Below, piece after piece: positions 7,588 to 61,721 of a DNA stretch of 64,000 nucleotides. Where the stretch lies: assembly GCA_043228905.1 (NCBI GenBank), contig JBHGNT010000018.1:4836001-4900000 (forward strand), written 5' to 3'. Positions within the stretch are counted from its first letter, which is position 1, and the number at the start of each line of letters is the position of its first letter. The position numbers and the translations under genes were made by a program. The stretch comes from Azolla caroliniana. Taxonomy: Eukaryota > Plantae > Polypodiophyta. The notes beneath the pieces are model-generated. The model was not told the origin of the DNA and did not search any database. It saw only the letters and a program-made list of their open reading frames with translations.

Positions 7588-10529
7588 AAGAAAGAAAGAT
7601 ATATTAACGTCTTCTAAGGCCAAATTTGGCCCATGAGACAATTGGTTTACAACAAAAGAGTATTTATCCAGTCATCATAACTAAAATAAAATAAAGTAAA
7701 AAATAGAACTTAAACTAAAAGAGTTCTAGTAGTGTACAATACGTAGTATACTCGAAAGTGACTATACACTAAGCCTAATTTTATTTCCACCCAAGCCTCT
7801 CGAAAAGAAGTGGGGGGTCAAAGGGTCTTGATGTGGGTGTGACCCGTGGTTCCAATGTAGAGAGTGCCCTAGCCATGGCTTCTAGGCGGTGTAGCTCACG
7901 TTCCCTTATTTTCAATATTGCTTCCACATCACGTCGAGTTGCTTTGAAACCCGACACCCGAGGACGTCTGGTTCTTCTCTGGTTTTCTGCCTCATCAATG
8001 GAAAGGCCGAGTGGTGCAAGTGTGTCGGCATTCGTTGTCTCCCCTTGTTCCTGAAAAACTTCATTTGTTACATGTTCATGATCATTAGCAACATTATTGT
8101 CAACATTTTGTAACTTATTCTCTCTGTGTTGTTTTAGCTCTAGAATGTATTTGCCTAATTTCTTTATATCTAGAGTATCTAATAGTTTGGGAAGGGTGGG
8201 AGACGAACCAAGTATGTCTTGGTATTTTGCCCTTATCTCGGCATAGGTTGGACACTTGCATGTAAAGTGGTACTCATCCTCTATCTCTATGTGACATAAC
8301 CTACATATCCTTTCCTCCCTAGGGACTCCACTAGTACGACCATTCTCAATCTCAAGTTGGTGAGATGATATTCTAAGTTGTCCAATAGCAACCCTTAGTG
8401 CATGTGGTAAGAATACATCTAGATATTTTGGCCGCGTGATAAAACCTAACTCAGAGAAGTGCATGAAGTGTTTCTTATAGTACAACATTTTAGATGGGAG
8501 TGGCTCTAGTGGGGTGATCCATTTACACCGAGTGTAAATTTGCCATATTTCTTGGCGTATTACTTTATTGCGGTCCTCATGAGAGATTAAAGTGTTATCA
8601 CTCGTGTGGTTGTACCTAAGGGGAGGTAGGTTATTAATGTCTAGACCATTCGCAAGAAGCCAACTCACCATCATGCCATACCATGAGCTAGTATAGCCGG
8701 ACTCATACAATGATCGAGAGGCCTTAAAGGCTTGATGAGATATTCTATCATGTGGTTGGCTATGTATCCTGTGAATGAAGACTACAAGTTGAAAAAGTGC
8801 CTCTACTAACATTGGGGGTAACGTGAACTCAACCCTAATAATGTCATGTGGTACAGTCGATTTGCTTCGGAGTTGGTGTGATAGCATCATCACCAATGGT
8901 CTCTCTAATTGCGTCCACATGAAAGATGGTAATCCTGGAGCCCAAACCGCTGATGCATACATGAAGGAGGGGGTCACTAATGAGTCAAAGAGCCACCCTT
9001 TAGTCCATGGCTCTTGAAAGTGTGCTTGGTGGCATTGTCTCTCTAGGAGTGAGAGGGATGCATGTCCTCTCGTGAGTCTATCCTTCGCTGCCTGTGTCAT
9101 CGAAAATTTACCTGAGCGGGCACTAAAAGTGACTCCGAGATAGACGTATGATCCAATCACCTCGACTGGGCTATGGGAGATAGTTAGGTGACACTTAGCT
9201 CTAACTTGGGCCGATGTGTGGAAGATAAGGACTTTCATTTTCCCTAGATTCACTACCAATCCTCGTTGTACACAAAAGTCATCTAAGGCATTAAGGTGCC
9301 TTTGTAGGTTGTGTTCGAATTCAGAGAGCAAAACTATGTCATCCGCATAGAGCAAGATACGAACCTGCGTATCCCCAAGGACCACTCCGGTGCCTCCCTC
9401 ACGAGCAATAAAATCTGTGATCTCATCAATGTAGATCCCAAAAAGCGTCGGTGATAGGGGGCAACCTTGTTTTACACTAATAGTGCTAGTGAAACGATTA
9501 GATAGGCCACCTGGGCATCAGACACTTGTTCATATAGTGCGTAGATGGCCCATACCATATCATCTGGTATCCTCAAACTTTTAAGTCTATCAAACAACCA
9601 CTCTCTAGGGACTGTGTCAAAGGCTTTGCGGAAGTCCACAAAACAACAATATAATTTCTTCTTGCGAGCCTTAGTTTGGTCAATTAGGCATCTAAGTGTG
9701 AAGATATGATCAATAGTGGAGAAGGCTCGTCTAAAGCCAGCTTGTTCAGGTGCACGAAAGTTTAGGGTCTCCATATAGTCGCTAAGCTCTACTTCCATTA
9801 CTGCACCATATAACTTAGCAAGGGTATGGCCTATCATAATGGTCCTATATGTATTTGGGTCCATGGGGTCCCCCCCTTTATGTATGGGAGCCACTGTATT
9901 CATAGTCCACTGTGGTGGAAAACCCTCCGCAAGGGCACGATTGAAGATTAGAGTTAGCAAGGGAACTAGGCACTCTCTCGCATATATAATGTGTTCTGCT
10001 CGCAATCCTGTGTGGTCCATGGACTTCCTATGTTGTAATTTCTTTATGACCTTCACGACCCTAGAGGTCGTGAAAAGTGTCCCCGTGGTAGGCCGGGGTG
10101 TGGAAGGCATTGGAATGGGTGGTTGGTTTGGGATTTGGTAAAGTTTCTCTGTATATGTGTGCCAAGTTTCGGGATCTTCGATGGGTGTTTGTGGTCTTGG
10201 CTCCCGTAGTCTCTTCCATGCCGTGGCGCAATCGCTACTCATGAGCATATGGTAGAGTTCCCAATATTGGGATGCCTCCCACGCTCGTCTCTTACGACGT
10301 GTCATCTTGCGCATTTCTTTGCGAGCTTGTATGGAGGTAATACTACCATTGAGTTGCGATACTATAAGTTGTCTATGTAAGTCCCTACAATCCTCATCAT
10401 ACCATTTATTTTGTGGCATTGATCCTGATCTACCTTGATTTGAGTGTTTTGTATATGGGAAACTGCTAGCTGCTGCGGAGTGAAGGATGTGTGTGAGTTT
10501 CGTACTAAGGCTTTCTAACGGTAGGGAGG
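7588..10529 (-). mobile_element. 5'-truncated LINE (RTE/RTEX-like family 2) inserted in the 3' LTR of copia A; (CTTT)n tail
   Basis: RT motifs EQAGFRRAFSTIDHIFTL, FVDFRKAFDTV, GCPLSPTLF, LYADD; C-terminal CRLC..EDEYHF..CP knuckle; tail aaagaaagaaag at ~7587-7598. LTR sequence resumes at ~10530. Confidence 0.93.
7781..10529 (-). pseudogene. LINE reverse transcriptase ORF (frameshift near 9470-9520; endonuclease missing)
   Basis: ORFs 9472-10548 and 7781-9385 are consecutive parts of one RT protein. Confidence 0.9.
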
Positions 10530-10639
10530 GAGTGACTATATAAAGCACTCTCCTCCTACTTTGTAATTGTTCGGTTAATCTCCTTTGTAATATACATTTG
10601 TCTTGAGTACTCTATTCTTGTTCAAATCTATCTATCTTG

Positions 10640-11300: not shown

Positions 11301-11568
11301 TGTCTGTGTCTATGTTTGTCTCTGTGTCTTTGTAAGTGAGAGAGGAAGGGTCATAGACTGTACTGATAGTGTGAAACCAAGACGCCCCAAAATACAGTTT
11401 TTTAACTAATTCCTCTCTCTCCAACACTCCCATGCTCTCTCTCTTTCCTTCTTCTTTCCTTCTTCTTTCCTCTTTTAACTCCTCCTCTGTTTTCATCCCC
11501 CCCCCCCCTCAAACATTCATTCATTCATTCATTCATTCTCTGAGCGAGCGTCTTGCCTCCTCCCATCG

Positions 11569-14500
11569 ATGACTCGCATCTACTTCACCCCCACCAAACC
11601 CAAACCTCACATCCCATTAGCCAAAGGAGGAGGAGCAGCTTCTCTGCAGAAAAGAAATCACAACAAAGACACTGAATCTGTAAAACCCAACCACAATGGC
11701 ACTCATCACAACACCAGAAACCCTAATAACACTAGCAGCAGCAGTAATCACAATAACCGTAATAGTCTCAATCCTTCCGCGATCGAACAGATCGCCGATG
11801 GCCTCGAGAAAATGGTCCGTTCGTGGAGCCACCCGCATCAATACGTTGTTTCCAACCACTTCCGATGCACTGATCTTATAATCGAGAATTCTGGTAATAG
11901 TAATGGCGTTGTTACTGATGGTGACAGTGAGGCAGTAAATCAATATGCTGGTCAGGAAGGCAATGCTAGCTTGATTTCTTCGGATACTGTTAAATCAGCT
12001 ACTATGGAACTGCATGAAGATGGTGAGTTCTCTATAGGAACTAAGGAGACCACAATTAGCTATATACATCAAAGAGATCTGCATCATCAACAACATCATC
12101 CACAACATCATGTACACAATGTGCATCATCATATACATAATCCACATCATCACCACCAACAACAACATTTTCAACAAACCCGAATCGTAGATGTAAGTGA
12201 TGAAAATGATGGATTTTTACATGAGGTATTGGGAGGAAGAGGAGGAGACAATGTTGAGAATAGACTGTTGAGTATACAAAACGGTCAGTCATGTGAGGCT
12301 ATGGATAGTTACCCTTCAATGGGAAATGGTATATGGTACCTTAACCCACCCCTCATGACGCCTAATACTGCAATTTTCTCTGCAAAAGAGCACGAAAATT
12401 GTGATACATGTCAAGCAAGTATGTGTGATGATGACGGTGATGTTAATAATGGGAGAGCTGATTTACAAAGACAAAATGTTAAGGTTGGTTCGGGTTGTCT
12501 TCTCCAAGAAAAAAGAAGGAAGAAACCTGAGAAGCTATCTTGCAAACTTGAGGTCGGTGACACCAACACTTGGAGTGAGACTGTTGAGATCAATGGTATG
12601 TATATTTATTCATATTATTATTCTTATCGTTTTTTTGGTTTAAACAATCTATATGGAAATTAGTGATATATAAAATACTTGATTTTATGCTAAGAATGGT
12701 TTCAAATATATGGATGACATTGTTGTGACGAATTTTATGGAGTGTGCATAATACTTTTGACTATGTCTGCTTTTGGACAATTATGATCTGGTATATTAGC
12801 GGCTGGTTTGATATCATCTTGTTTCGTTTCACCAGTCTTTACATGATGATGTTTGTATGCTAATTATATATTACATAGATGAATCACATAGGCGATTGGC
12901 TCATTGCATGGTGTCCATCGCAACCTAATGGTCTTGTGTATTGATACCAAATAATGGTAATGGTCCTGTACCTATAGATTATAACAATGTGGACCATGGA
13001 TCTGATCCATGAGTCATCATCTGTCTATCACATAATTCTAAACTATGTAAAATATGAATGATTAATGGATCCCATACATGCATCCGATCCATTACTTGTA
13101 TAGAATAAACTAAATCATGTCTTTGGTGCACTATAAACCACACAAGAAATGGATGATTAGTGGATGTATCAGGTTCATTAAATCATCCATTCATCATCAT
13201 GCACCTACTAGAAGGATGTTCCAACAACTTCTGAGTGTTTTTTGTTTTCTGCTTCAATAGGGGGAAGCAAGATTAAAGAATTGCTCGGTAAGAAACTGAC
13301 AACGAGCAGCAATGACATGGGTTCCATTCAAGTATGCCACTACATACACATTGTTGTATAAGACCACATATATTGTTTATAAGTTTACATATTTGTTTTA
13401 TATAAGCTTAATTGGTTTGATTACATTATGTTGATAGGGAACAAACACACCAGATTTGGAGTATTATAAGAAGAAGGTAGAGGAGCTTCAAATTGCTTTA
13501 TTAGAATGTGCCATGGAGTATGAAGTGAAGGTAGATTCTTTGTTTAGTAGTTGCAATCAACATGGAAATATGAGAAATTCCATGTGTTCTTATATTACAA
13601 AAACAAAATGGCTATATAGATTGTGGAGATGAAGATGGAGGCTTTGCAAACAAAATCTCATGAACAACGGATTGAACCCTCAAAAGAGAAGGTAAGATTG
13701 AGTGATAAGAAGCCACCAACGGGTATATATGTGTATGTGTGTGCACATTGATCTTAGTAAACATGTGTTTATCGATATTGATCTATACGTATGTACAAAT
13801 GTATGTTTGTTTTTATGCATGTATAATCTACATTTATATACGCATAATTCTTTTCTATGATCATTCCGCACAAGGAGGTGGCAATGGTTTTATTCTCAAC
13901 TAATCTGTACTAGCATTAGGATGCTGAAAACAGTCGTAAAGGAAATCGACATGAGGCTCAGAGAGTGGAATACCTCAAGAAACAACTGTCCCGATTACAG
14001 CATGAGAAAGCGATGTCAGCTCGGCAGCTCGGTGATCTCCGGAAAAGAGAGAGGTCTGGAAATGTTTCTCGGAATGTTTGATCATCGCTGGAAAACAAAG
14101 AAACATCCCTAACTTTTTTTGGATATTTGTTAGAATACCCCCTAAATTAAACACACTTACCAGTATATCGCGGTGCTGGACAAGAAATGAGAACTTAAGA
14201 GGCATTCTTTTAAAACACTAGCAAAGCAGAGACTAACCATAAGGGCATGCTGGTAATTTTGAAACTTGGGGGGTATTCTGGTAAATATCCCAAAAGCTAG
14301 GGATAATTTTTTGTCTTCTTTGATCAAGCATTACATCATGGGTGATTTGCACATTACCTCATTAACTATAGGCAGTGTATTGTGACCATCATCTACCGAT
14401 TTTGCTCTTTTTAAGTTGTGCATGACTTAAAAACCTTTACAGGCAATTTGATTTGCAGCGCCGAAGCTTAGATGATGCATTGTGCCGAGTTAACTTCCTT

Positions 14501-30850: not shown

Positions 30851-32791
30851 TTGCATTGCAAACCTTATCTGTTTGGCCTCAACCCTATGTTAACATTCAA
30901 TTGACATCTTTATTAATGAACTTGCAAGTGGAGAGTGCACATTATGACCAAGTGCAATGTGTTTAATGATACATCAAAGCTAGAAATGTGGGAAAGGTAA
31001 GGTTGAAGCTAGATAAGTGCAACAAGATCATGATACTAGAGTCACAAAATTCTTCGGGGCAAAACATGCATGGCTGATGAATCTCAACACCCTATCTCAC
31101 ATCAAAGGTATTGAAATCTAAATCATATGGAATCATCAATATTACTGAGATTGTAGGCTAAGGATGAAGTCAAACATGTATGAGTGACATGATTTCTGCA
31201 TTCCAACAATATGATGGTTTTGGAGTTTAATGTAACATTTGTAATATAACTTTTGAAGTGTGACCCTCCACGCCTCGTGAAGTCGTTGATACATTGATGT
31301 TGCAATTCCCTGAGGCTAGATAACCTCATGTATCTTTAATATTACTATACCACTATCCCCATGCACATAATCTCTATGGAAAGGTATCCAATCATGGGAA
31401 GTAGGAGTATATATGGTGTTTGTATCTTAGCTTCATCAATACACTTCATGGAACAACATTTTTTTACATTTTAAAACTATTTTTGAGTGGAGTAGAGATG
31501 TCAGCAATTAGGACTCCTCATTTCAATCTCATAGAGAAGCACCATAGTTATCAAAGCGCCATATATGTATTTCTCGACTAGTGATAAATCTTTGGCAAAT
31601 GTTTTCATTCTTTCCCGCTTCTTAGCTACACATAGTAGATCCATCCTATTTATGTTAGAAAGGAATCTCAGGGTCAAGATATTTGAAGCTTTATATCATT
31701 GATTAATTTCCAATGACCCATCATTATACATGATGCCTAGTTTATACCTATTGACAAAGGTAGATTTTGTGGACCCTATTTCTACAATGTTGTGTGTCAA
31801 GAACAACAAAGTCAAAAAAAAAATGTTGGAAATCTCTCTCTTCACTACATTCCATAGTTGTGTTGGATGAAAACCTAAAGTATTTGTTGTTGAATCTAGA
31901 TAGTGGTTTCTTGTCTCTGGAATTCCAAAGTACATTTGAATTCTTCAAGGTAATGGACATGTACAACGTGAACCCACCGATGCATATTTGAATAAGAAGA
32001 ATGATATTGATTTCAATGTGTTCCCTAACTCTTATGTTTCTCAAAATTTGATTAATCATCTTAGTGCCCTATTCGTCATTCAACATCCTCTTCCCTATCA
32101 TCAATTGTTCACATTTTCCCTCACCATCCTATTTCAATAACCTCGACCTTAAAATATTATCAATAGCTATCCCCACCCCATCATTCACTAAATAATACAT
32201 TGTTTTTTCCTAAAATTTGTGTCAACTTTTTAAATAATCTCCAATCCATTTTGTACTAATGTGTTAGTTCTCAAGTTTATGTTACATAAAATTTAGGCAT
32301 AGTCAATTAAGGAGTAATGTCACACAAGCCATTTAATTCTTATCAAAATAAAGTATACAATGATAGAGAAATAAAAACATAATCAATTAATGAATAACCA
32401 TAACAAAAATAATTCCACCACGGTAAGCACTTATTTGAAGCAAAAGCATGAAAAAGGGAGCACATTTATTTGATGCACCTTAATGTAATGGTGAAATAGG
32501 GTATAAAATCAAAACAAACATACATGTACATATCTATATATTTGTGCTTTCCAAATATTACATTTAAAATGGCATTCTATGTGGCATTCTATGAAATGGT
32601 ACACCATTTTTCTTAAACACGGGGAAAGAATTCTAAGGCATAAAAATCCATATTTGATTGGTCCTAGATCATCTATTAAGAACATCTTTTCCCTCTTGTA
32701 AAGAAATGAGGAGGCAAGAGTGATTGTAATGCAGTGGAAGATGAGTGTGTGTGTGAGTCCCAAGACAGAGAGAGAGTGAGTGTGTGTGAGA

Positions 32792-33242
32792 GAAAGCTCT
32801 TACGACAGAGATAGATAAACTGTATATTACCCAAGATTACATCAAAACATAAACATCCAACAACAACTAAGTTACAATGTGTTAGTTTATATACCAACTA
32901 AGCTAGGGCAAGTGCCCTTTCTACTATTTACAAAACTAGCTCAACATGTCCATGAGCTAGTGTGAAACCTATCTATGGGAAGTTGAGTTCGATTCTCAAC
33001 ACGCCCCTTCGAACATAACTTCCATATGTCAAAAAGTTGTTTCGGTCTTTGGAGTACTTCGATTTAAGGAATCAGATTCCGGCTTTATTGCTTTACGCTT
33101 CTTATTGCGTGTTGCGTAGTCTATCCGTGTTGCGTATGCTGCGTACTCCCCCTCAAGCTCGGCAATGTAGATGTCGTGAGACCAAGGTCCGATGCAAATT
33201 GCCCGAGCTTGTCGACGCCTAGAGCTTTCGTAAAAATATCAG
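32792..33242. repeat. Direct repeat copy 1 (partial LTR + PPT + pol end)
   Basis: About 6 differences from 35240-35689 by eye. Confidence 0.95.
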
Positions 33243-33286
33243 CAGCCTTCATCACGCACTTAGAACGTGCGAAATATGAGAAGAGA

Positions 33287-34476
33287 ATGACCAAAGGGAA
33301 GGAAATGGAACTGCTCGAGGATTCGGAGACTGTAAAGAGTTTTTTGCATAGGTCCGATCCTTTCAAACAGCTTCATTATAGTGTTTTCAATGGCGAAGTA
33401 TCCCAGATGCTCGAACTGTTACCGAGAAGGCACTACACTTTGCTGATAGTTGACATACCATATGGTTTCCGTATTGCGGGATCAACATATGATGATGTGC
33501 CTTTCAAGTACCCTCAGATCGAGAAAATGGTAAAGGATTTCGCAGAACTGACATTGGCCCCCTTGTGGAGGATAGTTATATTTCATAGCATGGGGCAATC
33601 ACTGTCAGTCACAACAGCTTTGAAGTCTCGTTGTCATGCCACTGAACACATGCATTGGTGTGTTATAATTCGCTTTTACTCATTACAGTACTTCTTATTA
33701 TATGTACACATTTACACCTCTAATACTTGATTTTCTTTCTCTATAGGATCAAAACAAATATTACACGTAGCCCTGGCGATCGAATGGTTAGTGCGGTCGA
33801 ACATTTTTGTGTGGGCTACTATGATTCAATTACAAAGAAGAAGGCTAGAGCACATGTCAATGAGCGTAACGTGGTTAACTACATCATGTGCCCAGCCGTA
33901 ACCAAAAAATTAAGACATGTGTCAGGGGATAAAAGTATGGTGAACCCTTATCAAAAACCTCAAAGATTGATCAACCGCCTCATAGAGCTCTTCTCGAATC
34001 CAGATGATTGGGTCCTAGACTTGTTCTCTGGCACAGGTATAATATATATATTTAATTTCAATCTTGTCTATCAAGTTTAAGACGTTACTTCTTATATATA
34101 CTTGTTTGTGTTCATGCGACCATTAGGTACAACGACAGCTTGTGCATTGAAGATGTTTAGAAATTGTGTTGCATTGGAGAAGGACCCTGCTCAAGTTAAC
34201 TTCATCAAAATGAGGATCACAGGAATCTGGGACTGTCCAGATCAGGATCAAGAAGTCGGAGCAAAACACATCAACGAGACAGAGATGTTCCAGATGACTT
34301 CACGAGAACCAATGGAACCAATTGATGAAGAAGCAGGGGAGCTGGTGGACCTGGAAGATGTAGCACAGTTTGACCATACATCAGATTCAGGAGAGCTTGG
34401 AGATGACACGAATGAAAACAGTCTAGAACAATCAGCGCCAGAGGAGCCTGCTCTGCCTGATTTGCTTATAGATTGA
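33287..34476 (+). CDS. Beta-class DNA amino-methyltransferase (N6-adenine/N4-cytosine, N6_N4_Mtase-like), intron-containing; ~336 aa from the first ATG, possibly 5'-truncated
   Basis: Exons 33287-33657, 33747-34036, 34127-34476 with GT-AG introns of 89 and 90 nt. Spliced protein has LLIVDIPYG (motif IV), W-IKTN...EHFCVGY, NPYQKPQRLINRLIELFSNPDDWVLDLFSGTGTT (motifs X-I), RNCVALEKD (motif II) and an acidic tail. No stops or frameshifts. Confidence 0.88.
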
Positions 34477-35239
34477 TGTAGATGGCGTAATGTAAAAATT
34501 GAGGATTTTGAGGTATAATGTTCACCATCACTTCATATTATATTTGTATATGAGAACATCTGTAATTGTTTATCGTTTAATTAAATTCACCTGTTCATAA
34601 TTTCCCTTTTTAATCATTATTGGAACCGTTGTTTGTATTTACATATAATTGGTCACCATGCTCTTCTTCAGTTTGAGATATTAACATGATATTGTAATTT
34701 CTCATTTCCGTTAGCATGACTGCATATGAAAAGGCGAATGTTTTTGATAATAAGAGGTTTTTAGTTACCTACGGTTCAACTCTACTGGTTCCACATAGTA
34801 TAAATGAATGTTGTACGTAATTGTTACTCTTACCAATTACATTGTCATGAACTATATGACATTATACAATGAAACTATCGATATACCCGTCCAACAAGTG
34901 GGGTACTACTTTATTCCTAAACCCAAAACCACATATTTATAATTACGGTTTATGTAGTTTGACTCTACAATTTGAATATGGATACCAATTTTAGAACTTT
35001 ATATTGAACCAAGTCTTCAATTGTGCTCCATGATATGCAAATTGACACGAATGTGAACACATATACAATTTAGTAATTGCTAGGTTTTTTTTGTTCTATA
35101 TTTAACCATCAAGTCGCAAAAGGGGTACACATGCATCATATATTTTCGATATCAGGCTAAAATAGGGTACTTTTCTACATCTGGCCAACTATGCCAAAAG
35201 AGAATACGACATATTACCTGTTTCAAATGACCCGGTGTT

Positions 35240-35689
35240 GAAAGCTCTTACGACAGAGATAGATAAACTGTATATTACCCAAGATTACATCAAAACATAA
35301 ACATCCAACAACAACTAAGTTACAATGTGTTGGTTTATATACCAACTAAGCTAGGGCAAGTGCCCTTTCTACTATTTACAAAACTAGCTCAACATGTCCA
35401 TGAGCCAGTGTGAAACCTATCTATGGGAAGTTGAGTTCGATTCTCAACACGCCCCTTCGAACATAACTTCCATATGTCAAAAAGTTGTTTCGGTCTTTGG
35501 AGTACTTCGATTTAAGGAATCAGATTCCGGCTTTATTGCTTTACGCTTCTTATTGCATGTTGCGTAGTCTATCCGTGCTGCGTATGTTGCGTACTCCCCC
35601 TCAAGCTCGGCAATGTAGATGTCGTGAGACCAAGGTCCGATGCAAATTGCCCGAGTTGTCGACGCCTAGAGCTTTCGTAAAAATATCAG
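35240..35689. repeat. Direct repeat copy 2 (truncated LTR + PPT + pol end)
   Basis: Matches 32792-33242 and continues into copia RNase H. Confidence 0.95.
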
Positions 35690-36611
35690 TAACCTAGAGG
35701 TGCTTACTGATGTGTTGTAGATCGATCTCTCCGGCTTGTACGCGCTCGCGGATGAAGTGGTAGTGGACTTCGATATGCTTAGTCCACGCATGGAATACAG
35801 GATTCCACGCTAGGTAGATACTACTCATGTTGTTGCAGTAGAGACGAATTGGATCCTTGATGGGTACGCCCAGATCCTTTAGTACACGTTTGAGCCAGAC
35901 GGCTTTGCATGCAGCAATTGCTGCGCCCCTATATTCGGCTTCCATGCTCGACAGTGCAATTGTCGGCTGCTTCTTACTACTCCAGGAGATCGCTCTGCTA
36001 CCAAGAGAGAAGACGAATCCGGATGTGGATCGCATGTCCGCTTTATATCCTGCCCAATTCGCGTCTGTGTACCCTTCGAGTCGAATGATCACATTGGTCT
36101 TGTACATAATGTCGTAGTCCATTGTCGTACTAACATACTGAAGTATCCTCTTAGCGTAGTACAAATGAAGATTTCACGGATTCTGCATAAATTGGCTAAG
36201 TAGGCCGACCAAATAATTGAGGTCGGGTCGCGTAATGGTCAGATAGATCAAACTACCGATCAATTGTCGATACTGAGTCGGCTCGCTCTCGGCGGTTCCG
36301 GAACTGGCAATGATCTTGAGATTACAATCAAGAGGGGTAGTAACAAGCTTGCACTTGGTCATTTCGAACTTGTAGAGTAAGTTAAGGACGTAGTGCCGTT
36401 GTGAGATCATTATCCCGACTGGTGTCCGAATTACTTCAATGCCTAGGAATTAATGGAGTTCATGCAGGTCTTTCATTTCGAATATGCCGAAGAGAAGTGT
36501 TTTGACTTTGTTGATCTCGGCAAGATCCTTTCCTCCGATGACCAAGTCATCCACGTATAGGATGATGATGATCGGGCTATCCGACTCATTTCGGATGTAT
36601 AGAGAAGTGTC

Positions 36612-39167: not shown

Positions 39168-40434
39168 TGTTGAGAATCAAGCTCAGCCTAATGCAACGTG
39201 TGAACACACCCTTTGAGAATCTATGATCACTCAAAGGTCAAGAGTCACACCACTACTCTCTACACATTAACTATGTGTCATAGAATCATATTCTATGACA
39301 CATAACTAATGAGTTCTATATTCCCCATGACTATGAGTCTTCACGTACCCCAAGACAGAGTAGTTGTTGTAGTGAGTTAATGAAGAGAGAGGGTGACCTT
39401 ATATAAATCATCCTCCTCCTACTTCATACTAAGTCGGTTGTGACTCCTTGTAATGCTACATTTTGTAATTCATATTCTCCTTGTGAATATACATCTTCTT
39501 CTTCTTGAGTATTCTATTTTCCATTCTATCTAATCTATCTTGTGTTTTCTCTTCTCTCATCTCTTTCCTCTCACACATACACATAACACACATCTCTTCC
39601 TCTACACAAGAATCATATCCGATTCTTTACATGGTATCAGAGCGGTTTGGTAGCTCGATCTAGCCCATCCGCGTGTGTTGTGTTCTACGCCAACGTTCAA
39701 GAAGAACCGGCTCATCGATATCGTAATGCGACTACATAGCTCGTGTTCGAGAGAGAAGGAAAAGAAGAAAGAAAGCTTATTGACAATGAATGCTCAAATG
39801 AGGAGTGCTCTCCCTAGCGAGAAGTTGAACCAAAACAACTTTGCATCTTGGGAGTACAAGATGCACCAATACCTTGTCGGTCAAGGATAGTGGAGCTACA
39901 TCAAAGGAGCACAAGAAAATCGACCTGACCCGAAAGATGCCGACTACTCAACATGGGTGCAAGCGGCAAGCCGAGTGATGTATTGCTTGGAGACATGTGT
40001 TCATGATCACATGCTTGGCTACATTCGAGAAGCCGAAGGAAGCATGGGAGAATCTCAAGAAGATATTCGCCGCCAACACGACGACATGAAAGCTTCAACT
40101 ATGCCAAGAGTTGAACAAAATCCAACAAAGGGATATGTCCATGAGAAGCTACACCTTGAAGATCAAGGAGCTTTGTAACTCTCTCGGCTCAATAAGTGTT
40201 AATGTGGATGATGATGAGATGGTGCAAATATGCCTTGACGGCCTTGCACCACGGTTCAGCGCGATGAGGACCGCTGTACTAGCACGGGAGAATCATCCCT
40301 CTTTCTTCAATCTTCGATCCATGTTGTTGGTTGAAGAAAACCATGTTTGGACAAGGAGCAACGCCTCGGAAGGCCACATGCTCTACACGCATTCGAACGG
40401 AGGAAGAGGATGTGGCCAAGCAAGAGGACGATTC

Positions 40435-43400
40435 TGTTGGAAGCAATGTCGTCAGTGCGGAAGATCTTGAAGCACTCGATTCCTGTTTATTCCCTGTGTA
40501 TGACAGAATGTAGGTCGTTGCACAGAGAGAGAGAGAGAGAGACACAAAAGACTCTTTATTTCACAAAGCAATAATACAACAACCAACCTCACAAAGAGGT
40601 TACAAGGTCACTATATATAGTGACCGACTTAGGGCAACTACCCTTTATGCTAATTACATAAATGGCCAAAACGGGATGGTGTGAATACGTCCATTATACA
40701 CATGTATTCGACACTCCCCCGTAATGGGCGTATACATGGGTTATCTAAGATTACAGGTATAGACTTAGGTTCTCGGACATATCAGCTTTGTTCGAGTCGG
40801 CAGGATCCGAAGACAGAAGACCGAACTGGTCGGGTCGGAACAGTTGAAGCCGATCATTAAGGAGCTGATGTCGGTTGTCGGGAACCATCCTGCTCTGTGT
40901 CCGGCTCTAACCGGACTGGTTTGTCGTTACGCCCATCTGATGCCGAAGAGACCGAAAACGGTCTGCCGAGAGACATTTGGTCATTCCATCTGCGACATTA
41001 TCGGTTGTGGATATTTTCTCTAGACCGATTTTCCCTGAAATGACGCAGTCCCGAACGAAGTGATATCGAACGTCGATATGTTTGGAGGCGTTGTGGTGAA
41101 CCGGATTTTTCGACAAGGCAACAGCACCTTGACTGTCGCTGTAGACAACTGGAGCCGAGTCATGTTCGACTTGTCGAAACGTGTGCGCCAGCCGACCGAG
41201 CCACAAAGCTTCTTTTGCTGCGTCGGACGCAGCTACATATTCTGCTTCGGTCGTTGAGGTCGCTGTGCACTCCTGAAGTTTCGACTTCCACGAGATTGCT
41301 CCATTGCCGAATTTGAAGCAGTATCCGGTTGTTGATTTCCGACTGTCTATACAGCCGGCGAAGTCCGAGTCGGTGTAACCGACTACGCCTGAGGTTCGGT
41401 TCGGTCCGAAAAGAATGCCATGGTCTTTTGTGCCAGCCAGATATCTGAACACATGCTTGACTGCGTTCCAATGCGATCGGCCAGGATTGTGCATAAATCT
41501 GCTAACGACTCCTACGGCATGAGAGATGTCAGGCCGTGTCGCGACCATCAGGTACATAAGGGAGCCGACTGCCGGTGCATACGGTACCGACTTCATATCT
41601 TCCCCCTCCGAACCGGATGTCGGGCAGTCTCGCTGAGAGAGCCGAAGATTCATAGGGAGTGGGGTTGAAGCAGATTTGGCTGATTGCATGTTGAAGCGTT
41701 CCAAGACACGTCCGATATAGTCGGTCTGAGACAAAAAAAGATGTCGTTTATTGCGATGCCGACTAATCTTCATGCCAAGGATGTGTCGTGCCGGACCGAG
41801 GTCCTTCATGGCAAACTTCAACCGCAGTTGCCGAACGAGATCGGCAAGTTCGCCCGCGTGGCGTCCAGAAATTAGCATGTCGTCCACGTAAATGATGAGG
41901 AAGATGGGTGATCCATCTCGAGCTGTGTTGGTGAAGAGACAATGGTCCTCATCGCTTTTGGAGAAGCCGATTGATTGGATGAAGTCGTCGAACTTCTTGT
42001 ACCATTGTCGCGGTGCCTGTTTGAGGCCGTATAGACTCTTCCTGAGTCGGCAGACTAGATGTTCTTGGCCAGTTGCCACGAAGCCTTTTGGCTGCTCCAT
42101 ATAAATTTCCTCCTCGAGATCACCATGGAGGAAGGCTGTTTTGACATCTAGCTAAATCAGCTCCAAGTTGTCGGCTGCCACGACGCCGAGCAGAAGACGA
42201 AGGGTTGTCATTTTCACCACTGGTGAAAAAATCTCGTCGAAGTCGACGCCATATTCTTGTCGGAAGCCCTTCGCAACTAATCTGGCCTTGTACTTTGGGG
42301 TGGTCGAATCAGACGTCTCTTTTAGTCGATAAACCCACTTGCAAGGAAGAGCACGTCGGTTCCTAGGTAATTCGACCAGATCCCAAGTCTTGTTTGCCCG
42401 GATGGAGTGCATTTCCGACTCCATCGCCAGATGCCAGGTGGCCGAATCGACAGATGTCGATGCTTCTTCGTAAGACGTCGGTTCGCCGGCGTCGGTGAAG
42501 AAAATTCCAGGAGAATACCTCTCCGGAGGTTGCGACAGTCTCTCGGATCGTCGAGGTATGATTGGACTGGTCGCATCGGGTATCGAGGTCGGATGGTCCG
42601 AAAGCTGCTGTGCCGAGTCAGAGTTGTCCGAATCGGTAGTGTAAGGTTCAGCTACCCGTGAAGCTGACCGTGTGTTAAGAGCGGGGCCTTCTTGAAGGGT
42701 CGGCACATCGGAAAATGTGACCCTTCGGACTTCGATCGGTGTTTTGACTGATGGATTCATAGCCGACTCGTTGAACACAACGTCCGAACTTCGGACGATT
42801 TGTCTGCGTTCGGCATCCCAGAGTCGGTATCCCATTTCACCGTCGGATCCATATCCAAGGAAAATGCATTTCCTGGACCGAGGTGCAAGTTTTCGGCGAT
42901 CATCTTTCGGAATAAGGGCGTACGCCTCGCATCCGAAGATCCTCAGCTTGTCGTAATTCGGCTTACTGCCGATCCATAGTTCCTGAGGAATTTGAAGTCC
43001 TAGAGGTCTGCTTGGCGACATATTGATTATGTGTACTGCCGTGAGTAGAGCCTCTGCCCAGAAGCCATCTGACAGTCCGGAGTGTTGGAGCATGGAAACT
43101 ATCCGTTCTTGGATTGTCCGATTCATGCGTTCGGCAATCCCGTTTTTCTCCGGACTGTGTGGTGCCGTAAATTCACGTCGGATGCCGCGTTGTCGGCAGA
43201 ATTTGACGAATTCTTCTGATTTGAACTCTCCCCCATTGTCGGTCCGAAAGCATTTCAGTTTTCGGTCGGTTTGATTTTCTACCATAGCGAGCCAATCGGA
43301 GAAGATCGAGAAGACACGATCTTTGGTGCGAATTGGATAAGCCCACACCTTTCGAGTCGAATCGTCAATAAAACTGACGAAGTAAGAGGCACCGCCGAGA

Positions 43401-45742
43401 GACTGATGCGGCATTGGGCCACAGACGTCCGAGTGGACCAAATCGAGAGGTCTCGTTTCTCTTGGTGCTGATGTCGGGTGTGATGCGGCTGCTTGTTTGC
43501 CATACTGGCAATGCTCGCAGAATTGATGGTCGGAGAAGGAGAGTTTAGGGATGTATCCGGCTCTAGATAGATGCGTAATGCCGGCCTTGCTGAGGTGTCC
43601 TAATCTTCTGTGCCATAGTGATGACACAGGAATATCCACCAAAAACAGGTTACCCTCTCTGAGCGTAACATGTAACGGATACAGCGAGTGTATCTTGGGT
43701 CCTCTAGCAAGCAGGAGGTTCCCCCTGTGGAGTGTCCACCCTCCCGAAGAAAAACCGGCACGAATGCCGTCTTCATCTAGTTGTCCGACTGAGATCAATG
43801 GCCTTGAGAGCTCAGGTACATGTCGGACATTGTGAAGTACAAGTGTAGAGCCACCTGCAAGGTTGAGCTCTACTGTGCCGATTCCAATGATGTCACAGTG
43901 TTGCGAGTTACCGACTCGAACTGAGTCGGAGTGACGGATCGTATATTGCCAAAATTGGGATCGATGAGGAGTCACGTGAAATGACGCGCCCGAATCTAAG
44001 AGCCATGTGCTCGATTCTTCAGTCGTGAGCAGAACTTCTGATCCGACTGGATTTTCGATTGATAGTATATTCGGGTCGTTTGGTAGCACATCAGCTGAGA
44101 AGCTGACGTAATTGATCTCCTCATGCCGGCCACTCTTCTTGTCTGATCTCTGAGACTTGTCGTTCTTGTTCTTGAGTGCGCGGCAGTCGGCTTTGATGTG
44201 TCCGGGTTTCTTGCAATAGTTGCAGATTCGATTATCCCGTGACTGGCTCCGTCTTCGCTGATTGTTCGGCGGCCGTGAGGAATCTCTTCCTCGTATGTTC
44301 GATCGGTCTGTCGAACCTTGTACTACGTAAGCGTCGTCTGTTGAGTCTTTGGCGAAAGACTTTCTCCGAGCTGCTTCGGTCAGGATTGCGCTCGTGACTT
44401 CGGAGTATTTAACAGCCGTGGTTGACGCATTGCACACGGTTGTGACGAAAGTTTCCCATGATGAGGGAAGGCTGCTCATGAGTATCATTGCTCTGAGTTC
44501 ATCCTCGATTGCCGTCCCCTGTGACGAGATTTGGGAGCTTATGCTTTCGTACTCATTGAGGTGTGCTTGAACCGAATCGGATTCTTTCATCCGCAAGTTG
44601 TAGAGGCGCCGGATCAGAAACATCTTCGTTGCAGCGACCTTCTTTTCGTAGGTGTCCGACAGTGTTTTCCACAGTTCGAATGCTGTCGTACACGATTGCA
44701 CCGTAAAGTATACCGATTCCGATAGGTGCATCCGAATCGTGGCGCGGACGATTCTGTCCAGCTTCTGCCACTCAATTGGTTTGTATCCTTCTGGAGGTTC
44801 TTCATTTTCGATGGGATCGATTTGCCCCTTGACTATGAGATAGTCCTGCATTTGCTCCTTCCAGAAGTTGAAGTTCGATCCATCGAACTTTCGTAGACTC
44901 ATTTCTGACGAGCCGGATGTTGATGCCATCAAATTTGGTTTCGGTTGACGAAGCTCGGTTCGGAGTTGACTACGAACCTTGTTGGAGTGCAGCCGGTTGG
45001 CTCACCCGATATCGTTCTAGTCGGATTTGAACCCGAGTCGGTTCGGCTTCGGATATATGTATTGTTGAACTTGCTCGAATTGACTCCGGTAACTTGAGGG
45101 ACAGAACCGACTGGTCTTCCCGAATGTTGCCGAGTCGGAGTGAGCCCGGTTCGCTTCCGAATATATATGCCAAATACCGATTATTGAATCCGATTGTTTG
45201 GACCGATTCTGCTTCGGGTGACTGCAGCGACGAGAGAGACGGATCCAACTGATCCTCTCGAATGTCGATCAGCCGGATGAAGCACGAATTGGGGTTGTTG
45301 TCTTGAGACCGATCTGCACCGAGTGGTTACAATGAGCGGCGAGCAGCGTTTGATGACCTCTTCGGATGCCGTTTAACCGAGTGGAGCACGATCGTGTCAA
45401 TGTTGCACAAGGGGATTTCACCTCGAGCGGTTACGATCACAAGAAACAGAGTACAACCAGCTGGCTTACTCCAAGCGAAGATGATCTAACGCGATGAGAT
45501 GCAAGCCTCGTTTTTTTTTTTTTCTTCTTCTTCTCTCTTCTTTGAATGACGCAGGAAACCGAATGCTGTGCAGGCTGAGACGACGTCCGACAGCGGATTG
45601 AAGGACCGAATACTGTGCAGGCTCTGATACCAGATGTTGGAGACAAGGTCGTCAATGCGGAAGATCAAGAAGCATTCGATTCTGTTCTGTACCTGCGTAT
45701 GACAGTTTCTAGGTCGTTGCACAGAGATAGAGAGAGAGAGAT

Positions 45743-53002: not shown

Positions 53003-53075
53003 AATATCATGGCTTAGTGGTAAGCCAATTGACTCTTAACTTGGAGGTGCAAGGTTTGAATCCTTACTTGCCCTC
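53003..53075 (+). other. tRNA-Lys(CTT)-derived sequence (SINE-like head) followed by (TA)n
   Basis: A box TGGCTTAGTGG, loop CT-CTT-AA, B box GGTTTGAATCC; no acceptor stem. Confidence 0.55.
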
Positions 53076-53079
53076 CTTG

Positions 53080-53111
<32 letters not shown>

Positions 53112-53893
53112 TTTATTTATTTATCTAGACACCGGATGACGGTGCGCCGCCGGTTACCGGTGGCTGCCGCCTCACCGGTTGCCGTCATCTCCCCAGCCCG
53201 TCAGATGCGGGTATCGCCGCCCCGTCGAATGCCGATTCCGCCAGATCACCGGCTTCGCCGCCGCCTCACCGGCTCCGTCGGATGCCAATACCGCTGGATC
53301 ATCGGCTTCGTCGTTGCCGGCACATGTCGATCACCGGTTACCGTCCAGTTCTGTTTTGGTTGGCCAAAACCTATACGAGTGGCTAGGCCACCACCACTCT
53401 TAGTTCAAGTTACCTTGAACTCTCTATGCTCCACACATAGACACAAAGATAATAACTTTTGCTCTACCTTATATATGGTGAGAGCCTTATTCGTCCTGTC
53501 TATATGGGATATCTCACAATTTTCTCTTTTTCTTTTGCAACTTCTTACCCACATAAGTTGACACTTAGATGTCTGTTTCTTATGTACAGTAAACATTCGG
53601 TTAAGTGCGCACTTTGATTTGAAGGGAAACATGTGCACTTAACTGAGCCGCACACTTAGGGCTTTTTACACACATAATTTGTTTTCCCCCTATTTTTCTT
53701 TTCTCTGCACATTTGAGTAAGCGTAGCCCCAATAGCCACCGATCAGACCCTCTTTGCACCTTAATCAATCCCACGTAGCTGGTCACAAGGCTGCAGCTTC
53801 ACCACGTTGTTGCTCAAGACACTATTGTGCACCTACAGTCTTCTTCGGGTATGTAGAGTTTCTGCGCATTTTCAAGTTTTTTAAGGCCAAATG

Positions 53894-54590
53894 TTTAGGG
53901 AATTAAAAAATAATTTCATTGTGGATGAGTATGTGGATGTATTTGTGCTCTTTTTACTGCTGAATTTGAGTAAATTTGTTGATTAGGTTCATAAATTAGA
54001 TTGCGGGTTTAGGGAATTAGAAAAAAATTTGATAATGGATGGGTATATGAATGTATTTTTTTGTTTTTACTACTGAATTTGAGTAAATTTGTTGAATAGG
54101 TTCATAAATTAAATTGTGGGTTTAGGTAATTAGAAAAAAAATTGATAGTTGATGAGTATGTGAATGTATTTTGTTGTTTTTACTACTGAATTCGAATAAA
54201 TTTGTTGATTAGGTTCATAATTAGATTGTGGGTTTAGGGAATTAGAAAAAAAATTGATAGTGGATGAGTATGGGAATGTATTTTGCTGTTTTTACTGCTG
54301 AATTTGAGTAAATTTGTTGATTAGGTTCATAAATTAGATTTCGAGTTTAGGGAATTAGAAAAAAAGTTGATAGTGGATGAGTATGTGAATGTATTTTGCT
54401 ATTTTTACTGCTGAATTCGAGTACATTTGTTGATTAGGTTCATAAATTAGATTGCGGGTTTAGGGAATTAGAAAATAATTTGATTGTGGATGAGTATGTG
54501 AATGTATTTATGTTGTTTTTACTGTTGAATTTGAGTACATTTGTTGATTGGGTTCATAAATTAGATTGACGATTTAGGGAATTAGAAAAT
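53894..54590. repeat. ~113-bp tandem repeat, ~6 copies, inside the pogo element
   Basis: Unit tttagggaattagaaaaaa...tggatgagtatgtgaatgtatttt...ctgaatttgagtaaatttgttgattaggttcataaattagattgcggg. Confidence 0.95.
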
Positions 54591-54638
54591 AATAAATATA
54601 AGTCAATGTGAAATTAGCTCATTAGCCTTATTACAGAG

Positions 54639-56364
54639 ATGAATTCAACCCATAAGCGAGGTGTTGAACCTTGTTTGAATGATGAACAAAGGCTACAAAT
54701 TTTGGAGATAGTGGAACAACCATTGGCTCCTTCTCTTCGCAACATAGGTAGAAATTTTGGTGTAAGTGAATCATCGATTAGAAGTTTGATCAAGAAGAAG
54801 GATGAGATACGAATGCGTGTCCAATTAAAAGATCATAATACAAGGAAAACAACTTTTAGGGGATCCAAAGGGAACGCTTGTATGCTTGGATTGATGCATC
54901 TCGTCGATTGTCAATTGCATTGCCTCCATCCGTTATTATGGAGAAGGCTCGGCGATTGGCTACACAAATGAATATTTGTGATGATGATTTCAAAGCAACT
55001 TGGGGTTGGTTTAGGAAATTTCGTCATAGCCAATGTTTGAATACTATTAGTTTGTATGGCGAAGGAGGGGCAGTTAATCGAAATGACCCAGAATTGTTGG
55101 CTTCTTTTGAAATGCTCTATGCTATAATCAACGAGTATGATGCTAGTTGCGTTTACATAGGGATGAAACAGGCTTACTTTTTCGATTAGTTCCAAGGTAT
55201 ACAGTGCTTTTGCCTAGTGAAGATCCTACAACAATTCGAGGTAAGAAAAAATTGCTAGATAGAGTTACCTTAGTTGTTTGTTGTAATGCGACTGGAACTG
55301 AAAAAGTTCCCATTACAATGATTGGAAAGGCTAAGGAACCAGCTTGTATTGTTGGAAATTCTTGGCCATTGCCCTATTTAGCACAAAAAAATGCTTGGAT
55401 TGATATCCCTACTTTTAATAAGTGGTTTGATCATGTGTTTGTACCTTTTGTTCGTTCTCGAACTAATCGCAAAGTGCTTCTAATCCTTGATAATGCTCCT
55501 GGTCATGCCGAAACATTTGAGCGTGATGCTATCAAAGTGATTTTTTTCCCAGCCAATGTCACATCATGGAAGCAATCAATGGATATGGGAATTATTGAAG
55601 CGTTGAAAAAGAGGTACAAATATCATTTGATAAGAGAAATTTTGACATATCATGATAGTCCAGAAAATGTTAAGATTCGTTTGGAGGATGTTGCTAAACG
55701 AATGAGAAGAGGTTCTATTGGTTTAACTTTTGGAAAGTTGGCACATTTGCTAGATGCTGCCAATCTCATTGTTATTGCTTGGAATGAGATCAAGCAAGAA
55801 ACACTTTTTAATTGCTATAGAAAGGCAGATATTATTCCATCATTCCGCATTAATGATGTTGAAGTTGTTGAAATGGAAGATCAATGCCTTGATGATCTTG
55901 TTGCTTTGTTATGTAACTGCAGTTTGCTTGAGAATGCACATAATGTAGAAGAAATTCGAGAGGAAATCATGGAATGTGTCAATGCAAATGCAAATGAATC
56001 AAAAAAACTAAATCAAAATCTCCTTGAAGAGATTGATGAAGTTATAGCGCAAGCATCCAACATCAATGAACCACTTGCATATGATGAAAATGATTCAGAT
56101 TCTGAGTTTGTTGAGATGCAAGATATGCATGGATGCTTAAAGCAAGAAGATGTGATTATTCCTGAAGTATTGCAAAATATTGTTGATACCGAACTCATGC
56201 TCAACTCGATAATGACAACTTATTTGAGTTCCGAGAAAACAAAGCAAGTAAATTCAGCTTTATCGAGTGCTTGTAGAATTATTCAAGAAGCAAATTCTGC
56301 CATTGTTTCTAAGCGTATCGCTAAAAGTAGGCAAATGACCTTACATGATTTTGGTATGAAATAG
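54639..56364 (+). pseudogene. pogo/CENP-B-like DD30D transposase with two frameshifts (~54875, ~55160)
   Basis: HTH (IGRNFGVSESSIR); FKATWGWFRKFR; DETGL; LILDNAPGH and QSMDMG with 30 residues between the last two Asp. Confidence 0.92.
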
Positions 56365-60700: not shown

Positions 60701-61721
60701 ACGGGCGGCATTCGAAAGGGAAATGGAGATTTCACAACGAGTCACCGCTTCCGCCCTCGAAGAAGTAAATATGGGTACGGAATCGGAGCCTCGTTTCCTC
60801 TCCATCGCAAAGGAATTAAGGTCGGACCAGCGAAACACGATGATCGCACAAATACGGTGGCATAGTCGGATGATACGGTATTTGGCGGACTTCACCACGC
60901 CGTTACACGCTGTCGTACATCGGACTCCTTTCCAATGGACTACAACAGAGGATAAGGCCTACGAGGCACTTAAGATAATGCTCACACAGGCTCACGTCGT
61001 ACAACCACCAGTTTGGGCGAAGCCATTCCACGTGTTCGTCGACGCCTCAGACATAGCAATAGGAACTGCACTAATGCAGCTCACCGAACCAAGCTGGTAC
61101 CGGCCAGTATACTACGCTAGTCGCAAATTATCAACAACAGAGCGTAACTACTCCACAACGGAGCAGGAGGCGCTAGGGATGATCTATAACATCAATCAAT
61201 TTTGGCACTATTTATTAGGAAGGAAATTCACGTTCCACGTGGATCATTCGGCGCTACTGTATTTGGTGGAGAAACAAGCCCTGACAGGGAAATTGGCGCG
61301 GTGGATGTTGCTGCTCTTGGAATTCGATTTCGTAATCCAACACCGACCAGGGATGCAACACGCAGTGGTGGATTTTTTGAGCAGACTCGAGAATGGAGAA
61401 ACAGTACAAAAAGATGACGACGATTTTCCGGACGCCGATATCCTGCGGGTAACGACACTAGCAAAAAGAACGGAATCGATCTTTCCGGACCGGTGGCTTA
61501 TGTAAATGACGTACTTTTTGACTACGAGACTGCCTCCACCACAATTACACACGGACAAGAAGAAACGACTAGACGTCCGAAGTCGTCACTTCTGCCTCGT
61601 CGAAGGCGTTTTATATCACAAAGGAAGTGACGGCATTTGGCGACGTGGGGTACGGCAAGATGAGAAGGAAGCAGTTTTACGAGAAGCATACTGCGGCATG
61701 GCAGGCGGCCATTACGCGGGC
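57767..61721 (+). mobile_element. Ty3/gypsy element (non-chromovirus-like), decayed, RT largely deleted, interrupted in integrase by copia C2
   Basis: LTR 57767-58205; offset PBS-like tggcatgc.. at 58210; gag with CCHC knuckles; protease IIDGGSSVN; RNase H FVDASDIAIG...VDHSAL; start of the integrase zinc finger. Confidence 0.9.

Follow-up and report, generated by a model that had tools for sequence, protein, structure and literature searches.

How does a gene for a prokaryote-type DNA amino-methyltransferase come to lie in a fern genome, and is it a working gene of its host? This question is raised by a 64,000-nucleotide stretch of the Azolla caroliniana assembly GCA_043228905.1 (contig JBHGNT010000018.1, positions 4,836,001 to 4,900,000; hereafter the window), in which a first-pass annotation had described an intact, intron-containing methyltransferase gene. 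We found that the window copy is a 5′-truncated relic of a multi-copy DNA transposon and no stand-alone intact host gene. Overall, we lean towards the reading that the parent was a Sola-type transposon with a methyltransferase as cargo, and that in intact copies this cargo would be an N6-methyladenine (6mA) writer serving the element.

The methyltransferase gene model

Three exons on the plus strand, each free of stop codons in its own frame, are joined by two GT-AG introns. Exon A (33245–33657) carries the catalytic motif IV (DIPY, 33452–33463); exon B (33747–34036) encodes the target-recognition region, NPYQKP and, as its last residues, the DLFSGT of motif I; exon C (34127–34476) contributes the end of motif I, the ALEKD of motif II, an acidic tail and the stop codon TGA (34474–34476). 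Intron 1 (33658–33746, +, phase 2) interrupts the W-x-K motif and intron 2 (34037–34126, +, phase 1) the SAM-binding motif, with the split codons TG/G and G/GT restoring Trp and Gly. The intron coordinates, the motifs and the open frame given in the first-pass annotation were correct. Frame continuity was read from the split codons, and homology searches were run exon by exon or with natural annotated proteins. Exon B alone exceeded the Pfam gathering threshold for PF01555 (34.2 bits versus a cut-off of 26.7, E = 3e-8), the family that had been expected. The donors and acceptors of both introns lie at identical positions in the fern-type copies compared (L001, L014, L006, L016, L023 and L022), down to about 56% amino-acid identity. 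Since these positions recur in copies with saturated synonymous sites, the gene model is not a product of chance.

The description as an intact gene did not hold, as only the methyltransferase domain is whole: compared with complete relatives, three upstream exons and about 17 codons at the 5′ end of exon A are missing. The reported length of 336 aa is right when counted from the earliest in-frame ATG at 33287 (123 + 1 + 96 + 1 + 115, summed from the exon lengths), but the complete protein is about three times longer and has a large N-terminal part. The reported start at 33243 falls within a junction, and the DNA to the left of about 33244 belongs to a minus-strand Copia retrotransposon, of which it forms the 3′ end.

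A transposon fragment fused to a Copia retrotransposon

We mapped this junction by comparing the window with L017, a complete copy of the transposon, and with a second Copia copy. On the left, outside the transposon, lies a complete Copia LTR (LTR1, about 449 bp, 32697–33145, minus strand), which terminates in TG on the plus strand at 32697 and whose 5′ 352 nt match 35240–35591 at 98.6%. It is followed by the polypurine tract and the last ~30 codons of the Copia RNase H (ADIFTKALG..., 33146–33244, minus strand), fused to the methyltransferase exon through a 9-nt imperfect microhomology between the RNase H end and the transposon (33240–33248, crossover at 33244/33245). To the right of exon C, the transposon goes on with its 3′ untranslated and subterminal region (34477–35202, +), at unbroken 98.95% identity to L017, and then reaches the right terminal inverted repeat (TIR; 35203–35239, 37 bp, ending GTGTT), whose inverted counterpart is found at L017 180–216. 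The transposon interrupts a Copia 3′ LTR (LTR2), of which the first ~352 nt follow at 35240–35593 (minus strand), and behind it lie a decayed polypurine tract, RNase H and part of the reverse transcriptase (35594–36611, minus strand). This Copia ends at about 36611, and the window holds no 5′ LTR. The 457-bp segment 32792–33248 recurs as 35240–35695 at 98.2% identity, and LTR1 shows, at 32791/32792, how the insertion site of the transposon reads when empty.

Over the right 2 kb of the transposon, the window (approximately 33240–35240) and L017 (5774–7774) are 98.95% identical, which together with the right TIR bears out the earlier suggestion of carriage by a mobile element. The two sequences show 21 differences, 15 of them C-to-T, and their methyltransferase exons differ by five synonymous and two non-synonymous changes; private amino-acid changes of the window copy are P>L (33314) and A>V (33449, adjoining DIPY). 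The transposase, the promoter, the 5′ exons and about 640 N-terminal codons are lost. The window piece (33245–35239), about a quarter of the element taken from its right side, is thus non-autonomous, with its entire catalytic domain kept and its promoter and N-terminus gone, and most likely a silent relic.

As the empty site in LTR1 shows, the transposon first inserted into the Copia 3′ LTR. In a second step, a microhomology-guided switch replaced the left 5.6 kb of the element with the RNase H end, polypurine tract and full LTR of a Copia of the same family. Insertion and fusion are of similar, recent age, since the divergence between LTR1 and LTR2 (1.75%) and that between the transposon piece and L017 (1.05%) are alike. 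The switch could have happened by template switching while a read-through RNA was reverse-transcribed, by repair using the empty allele, or by deletion between two adjacent Copia copies. The introns would survive the first route, since gene and Copia transcript run in opposite directions; target duplications cannot choose among the three, as the Copia breaks off at about 36611 and lacks its 5′ end. The Copia/methyltransferase junction sequence was not found in the metagenome collection, so there is no sign of the chimera having multiplied, and the rest of the 64-kb window yielded no further transposon copy, transposase or upstream exon.

As a separate observation, the layout of 32697–36611, a Copia 3′ end followed by an antisense transposon fragment and an interrupted LTR of the same family, fits retroviral-style capture by template switching and DNA repair equally. 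In both copies, the Copia LTR that directly follows the polypurine tract apparently starts with TA, not TG (33144–33145 and 35592–35593). Other transposon copies lie in or beside Copia elements related to that of the window (L008 5341–5960, L006 6008–6220, L017 21–180), and the L008 copy sits in an LTR related to the window's Copia family.

The complete element and its transposase

L017 is a complete DNA transposon of 7.6 kb, bounded by 37-bp TIRs (180–216 and 7737–7773, 97% identical), and carries two divergent genes, namely an 890-aa DUF7869 ORF and the multi-exon methyltransferase gene. Upstream of exon A, complete relatives have a short exon that is a candidate for the first, followed by exons of ~550 and ~46 codons, and from the exon lengths the L017 product should comprise roughly 950–1000 aa. 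The complete product consists of an acidic region, a conserved ~180-aa domain and the C-terminal methyltransferase; gene models of Ginkgo likewise hold the N-terminal domain and PF01555 within one protein. Throughout the family, elements measure 6–10 kb with TIRs of 22–37 bp, and the right TIR end is adjoined by a differing flank in nearly every locus.

The transposase ORF matches DUF7869 at E = 1.7e-52. An AlphaFold model of this protein (96-sequence alignment, pLDDT 89) matches ISCth4, Mos1 and P-element transposases, integrases and RNase H, each weakly (best E = 4e-3) yet in a mutually consistent manner. The conserved residues D266, D347 and D389 map to strand 1, after strand 4 and to the last core helix of the model, by which the protein is an RNase H-fold DDD transposase. 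A 4-bp target duplication, the divergent gene pair and AACA..TGTT-type TIRs are seen in each of the three copies from genome assemblies in which both ends are present: L020 of Riccia sorocarpa (TGTT), L021 of Adiantum nelumboides (TTTA) and L022 on chromosome 18 of Ceratopteris richardii (ATCT, at a site within a TATC-type repeat). Short-read metagenome contigs showed no target duplication, as expected from collapsed repeats. A Kolobok element with TTAA target, considered in view of the AA..TT flanks, was rejected: the empty site in LTR1 assigns the TT to the element, and the duplications vary.

DUF7869 is probably a Sola transposase. The element is called Sola-like here on the basis of two features that define Sola, the DDD transposase and the 4-bp duplication. 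Sola elements have been described as combining a DDD transposase and 4-bp target duplications with TIRs of 11–1124 bp and a length of mostly 2–9 kb, up to more than 15 kb (PMC10741241, summarising Bao et al. 2009), and they are reported to be much commoner in Azolla than in Salvinia (PMC6786969).

Between the two genes and near the ends we observed palindromic arrays (L022 7896–8395, L014 3757–3922, L007 1201–1504, L016 3933–4661 and L020 8300–12054). The array of L022 consists of 13.5 copies of a 31-bp unit, and related GCATCG-containing palindromes (GCATCGA-type) occur in L014, L017 and L023. These arrays, which are rich in TCGA/CG, are candidate methylation sites and equally candidate binding sites of the transposase or of the N-terminal domain.

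Distribution across streptophytes

Close relatives of exon A number in the dozens in ENA metagenome assemblies, two series of which contain the copies closest to that of the window; distant relatives were found in Diphasiastrum, Ginkgo, Chara, Adiantum and Riccia. The two-gene element with 4-bp duplications is present in Ceratopteris, Adiantum and Riccia, and the nearest named relatives come from Ceratopteris (62% for the transposase, 72% for the N-terminal exon). The first-pass annotation had proposed a writer in this plant and a long eukaryotic residence; the latter is right, and the former has to be widened to a streptophyte-wide family that is not peculiar to Azolla.

How tightly are the two genes linked? 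An upstream exon was seen in 70 of the 73 loci with at least 1.2 kb of upstream sequence, and a divergent transposase in 14/17 loci (12/15 distinct) with at least 4.5 kb. In three long loci, namely L015 (Ceratopteris), L202 and L220 (Chara), no transposase lay within reach. Across 11 elements, the identities of the transposase and of the methyltransferase-gene exons co-vary (Spearman 0.81–0.90), a pattern that fits co-inheritance, though among kin it proves neither this nor co-evolution. The transposase tree separates the plant proteins from animal DUF7869 proteins by a branch with 100/99 support, with Chara on a long branch. Transposase and methyltransferase have travelled together as a pair, at least in ferns and a liverwort.

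Many animal proteins annotated as uncharacterized (P0291–P0332, from lancelet, coral, bivalve and echinoderm) are DUF7869 proteins with the same DDD core. Furthermore, the gene models P0013 (Diphasiastrum O6H91_23G046600) and P0098 (Adiantum) are fusions of methyltransferase fragments with either cytochrome P450 or Copia integrase, which probably reflects the annotation of nested relics.

Methyltransferase class and base specificity

The order of the motifs, with the catalytic motif IV followed by the target-recognition region and the SAM-binding motif I, had been read as that of a beta-class amino-methyltransferase, and by its sequence matches the domain is indeed one of prokaryotic type (PF01555); relatives in Ginkgo score 66–69 bits against PF01555. 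Exon B matches beta-class adenine methyltransferases in the PDB and PHROG DNA methyltransferase families, and it also matches the CcrM/YhdJ-type NCBIfam models, far under their equivalog cut-offs. A family profile built from ten natural full-domain relatives was compared with the PDB and found CcrM (1.6e-12), MboIIA (2.3e-12) and DpnA/M1.HpyAVI (2.4e-11) well ahead of rotifer N4CMT (1e-6) and PvuII (9e-3). RNA methyltransferases reached only about 1e-2, and an RNA methyltransferase was rejected on this account. The best structural-database and phage matches are about 25% identical over the domain, and on the phage side adenine methyltransferases make up many of these best matches.

The DIPY of the window is a variant of (D/N/S)-P-P-(Y/F/W) and is aligned by the family profile to the DPPY of CcrM and MboIIA. 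Among the approximately 97 motif IV sequences of the family, 63 read DIPY and most others DAPY, DVPY or NIPY; SPPY does not occur among them. The nearest prokaryotic matches carry DPPF, DPPY or DIPY, and phage methyltransferases with the same IADIPY exist. Several annotated relatives have a decayed motif (DIPH, DAPH, DLPR). In CcrM, contacts to the target amine come from the Asp of DPPY and from its first Pro, at the position where N4CMT employs the main-chain carbonyl (PMC10406627), so the Ile of DIPY is plausibly tolerated. We expect with good confidence that the spliced protein of intact elements would be an active SAM-dependent DNA methyltransferase.

If active, the enzyme would probably write 6mA rather than N4-methylcytosine (4mC), in line with the lean towards N6-adenine already seen in the window. 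Motif IV gives only a lean, since N6_N4 domains have repeatedly switched between the two products (PMC8885841). For this same reason one may consider that the cargo writes 4mC, as the enzymes of Marchantia and rotifers do: rotifer N4CMT still matches the family profile, and the candidate arrays are rich in TCGA/CG. However, with no SPPY in the family and with adenine enzymes as the best matches in the PDB, NCBIfam and phages, we consider a 4mC writer unlikely.

The N-terminal domain

A conserved GGxH motif is present in the ~180-aa N-terminal domain of the plant proteins. Its GGSH form aligns with the GGH of phage ParB and with sulfiredoxin, an alignment that is not significant, and the faint matches of the domain are to DUF6551 (E = 0.004 in 7/10) and sulfiredoxin (E = 1.2). 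Comparison with phage ParB by hhalign, PDB search and phage tblastn gave nothing significant. The domain possibly has a ParB/Srx fold. Two phage matches of the methyltransferase that we examined are ParB-MTase-type genes, one of them directly upstream of a terminase.

Selection and the proposed role of the enzyme

Between element lineages, the dN/dS of the methyltransferase exons is 0.016–0.036 where dS is measurable, that is, purifying and not neutral; therefore, the element has kept the methyltransferase protein functional. Such strong purifying selection, estimated from the exon sequences, speaks for function and not specifically for catalysis. What might this function be? We propose that in intact elements one bidirectional promoter region would drive both the transposase and the methyltransferase gene, that the methyltransferase would mark the DNA of its own element, with the intergenic palindromic arrays as candidate sites, and that through this self-marking the transposase promoter or the element ends could stay in use despite 5mC silencing by the host. 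That the enzyme acts for the element, likeliest by such self-marking, has in our view an even chance of being true. The CpG/CHG content of the elements gave no sign of an escape from 5mC. A more far-reaching version, to which we give clearly less credence, would see an ancient streptophyte Sola-type lineage with an active, self-targeting 6mA writer, perhaps taken from a phage ParB-MTase, acting as a shield against 5mC and open to domestication by the host. If true, seed-free plants and some gymnosperms would own a real, transposon-supplied 6mA writer.

Instead of acting on the element in cis, the enzyme might mark the host genome broadly, either selfishly or after co-option, for example in sperm or spores. 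The genome-wide 4mC of Marchantia sperm provides a precedent (10.1101/2021.02.12.428880), copies without transposase occur in Chara and at L015 of Ceratopteris, and Ginkgo has annotated multi-exon genes. Most copies with sufficient flank nevertheless lie within elements and many are decayed, and a trans-acting, genome-wide writer would be harder to select for on a selfish element than a benefit in cis, making this role rather improbable. A further explanation is that the methyltransferase fold no longer catalyses and instead assists transposition by binding DNA or flipping bases, comparable to the inactive methyltransferase domains of DIRS elements, with the N-terminal domain as the main worker. 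Motif IV lacks its first Pro across the family, with more changes in some relatives, and Iyer et al. (PMC4738411) consider the DIRS1 methyltransferase domains likely inactive. On the other hand, fern-type copies show hardly any variation in the SAM-binding motif or in D-x-P-Y despite saturated dS, and phage methyltransferases share DIPY, so that we think it improbable that catalysis was given up.

It is very improbable that the host expresses the window copy as an intact gene of its own for a 336-aa methyltransferase: its domain is complete from ATG 33287 without stops or frameshifts and synonymous changes outnumber the non-synonymous ones, but an open frame is expected from youth alone since divergence is only 1%, the promoter and N-terminus have given way to an antisense Copia end, and the predominance of C-to-T differences is that of methylated, decaying repeats. 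We return to a transposon cargo that would act for its element, and what deserves attention is the family rather than the truncated window copy.

Comparison with known systems

With Sola, the element shares the RNase H-fold DDD transposase, the TIRs, the 4-bp duplication, the size and seed-free plant hosts; it differs in its second, divergent and intron-rich gene ending in an amino-methyltransferase. The bacterial beta-class 6mA enzymes CcrM, M.MboIIA, M1.HpyAVI/DpnA and M.RsrI have the same motif order and PF01555 domain, whereas the plant gene has DIPY for DPPY, spliceosomal introns, a ~640-aa N-terminal part and an acidic tail, and comes without a restriction partner. Phage ParB-MTase fusions next to terminase are similar in providing the best phage matches of the methyltransferase domain, while the N-terminal ParB match is non-significant. 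The kinship suggested earlier to Marchantia DN4MT1a/b and bdelloid N4CMT holds insofar as all are eukaryotic beta-class amino-methyltransferases of bacterial origin. It does not extend further: those enzymes carry (T)SPPY, write 4mC and are low-copy host genes, unlike a D-x-P-Y family with a large N-terminus on a multi-copy transposon. The Marchantia enzymes have no extra domains and the rotifer enzyme has a chromodomain, neither of which is the arrangement found here.

Eukaryotic transposable elements with a prokaryote-like DNA methyltransferase that is proposed to help the element are also known among DAM- and DNMT-carrying retrotransposons. DAM enzymes are carried by DIRS and LTR retrotransposons, with DAM-LTRs in AMT1-bearing unicellular lineages (10.64898/2026.05.21.726589); this paper makes no mention of N6_N4, Sola or land plants. 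Those carriers are retroelements, whereas here the carrier is a cut-and-paste TIR element of streptophytes, and the contact with Copia in the window is secondary and antisense. The clades listed in the passages of Iyer et al. (PMC4738411) covered here include none matching this methyltransferase.

Another comparison is offered by the VANDAL DNA transposons. Rather than acting as a methyltransferase, their anti-silencing cargo VANC removes 5mC. By functional analogy, both may be accessory genes of DNA transposons that alter methylation on their own copies. In the literature outside Repbase and subscription papers, we found no report of a beta-class amino-methyltransferase as standing cargo of a streptophyte cut-and-paste transposon.

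The family thus widens the circle of methyltransferase-carrying transposons beyond retroelements, to cut-and-paste elements and land plants. Genuine DNA 6mA and its writer are disputed in multicellular plants, and major multicellular lineages are held to have lost 6mA of the AMT1 type; the family offers a candidate plant 6mA writer and a predicted place to look for its mark, namely the element and chiefly its intergenic repeat arrays. Ceratopteris, Riccia and probably Azolla are tractable hosts. In addition, the family suggests a route by which bacterial amino-methyltransferases enter and persist in plant genomes, and DUF7869 gains a tested transposase assignment.

Other features of the window

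The only clear host gene seen in the window is an intron-split amino-acid transporter gene (PF01490, 25826–27693, minus strand). Contamination was rejected in view of this plant gene 5.5 kb away, the conserved introns, the exact Copia LTR junctions and the retroelement-rich context. A 394-codon open frame without Pfam match (11479–12660, +) adjoins the remnant of a LINE reverse transcriptase (7784–10611, minus strand). Within 53040–56361 (+), a pogo/Tigger-type DDE_1 transposase ORF (55147–56361, E = 4e-38) is preceded by a 113-bp tandem array (53893–54622) and a 173-codon ORF. Finally, the segments 40434–40733 and 61721–62020, 21.3 kb apart, are 100% identical over at least 300 bp and are probably the LTRs of a very young Copia family, with a 949-codon ORF at 42155–45001.
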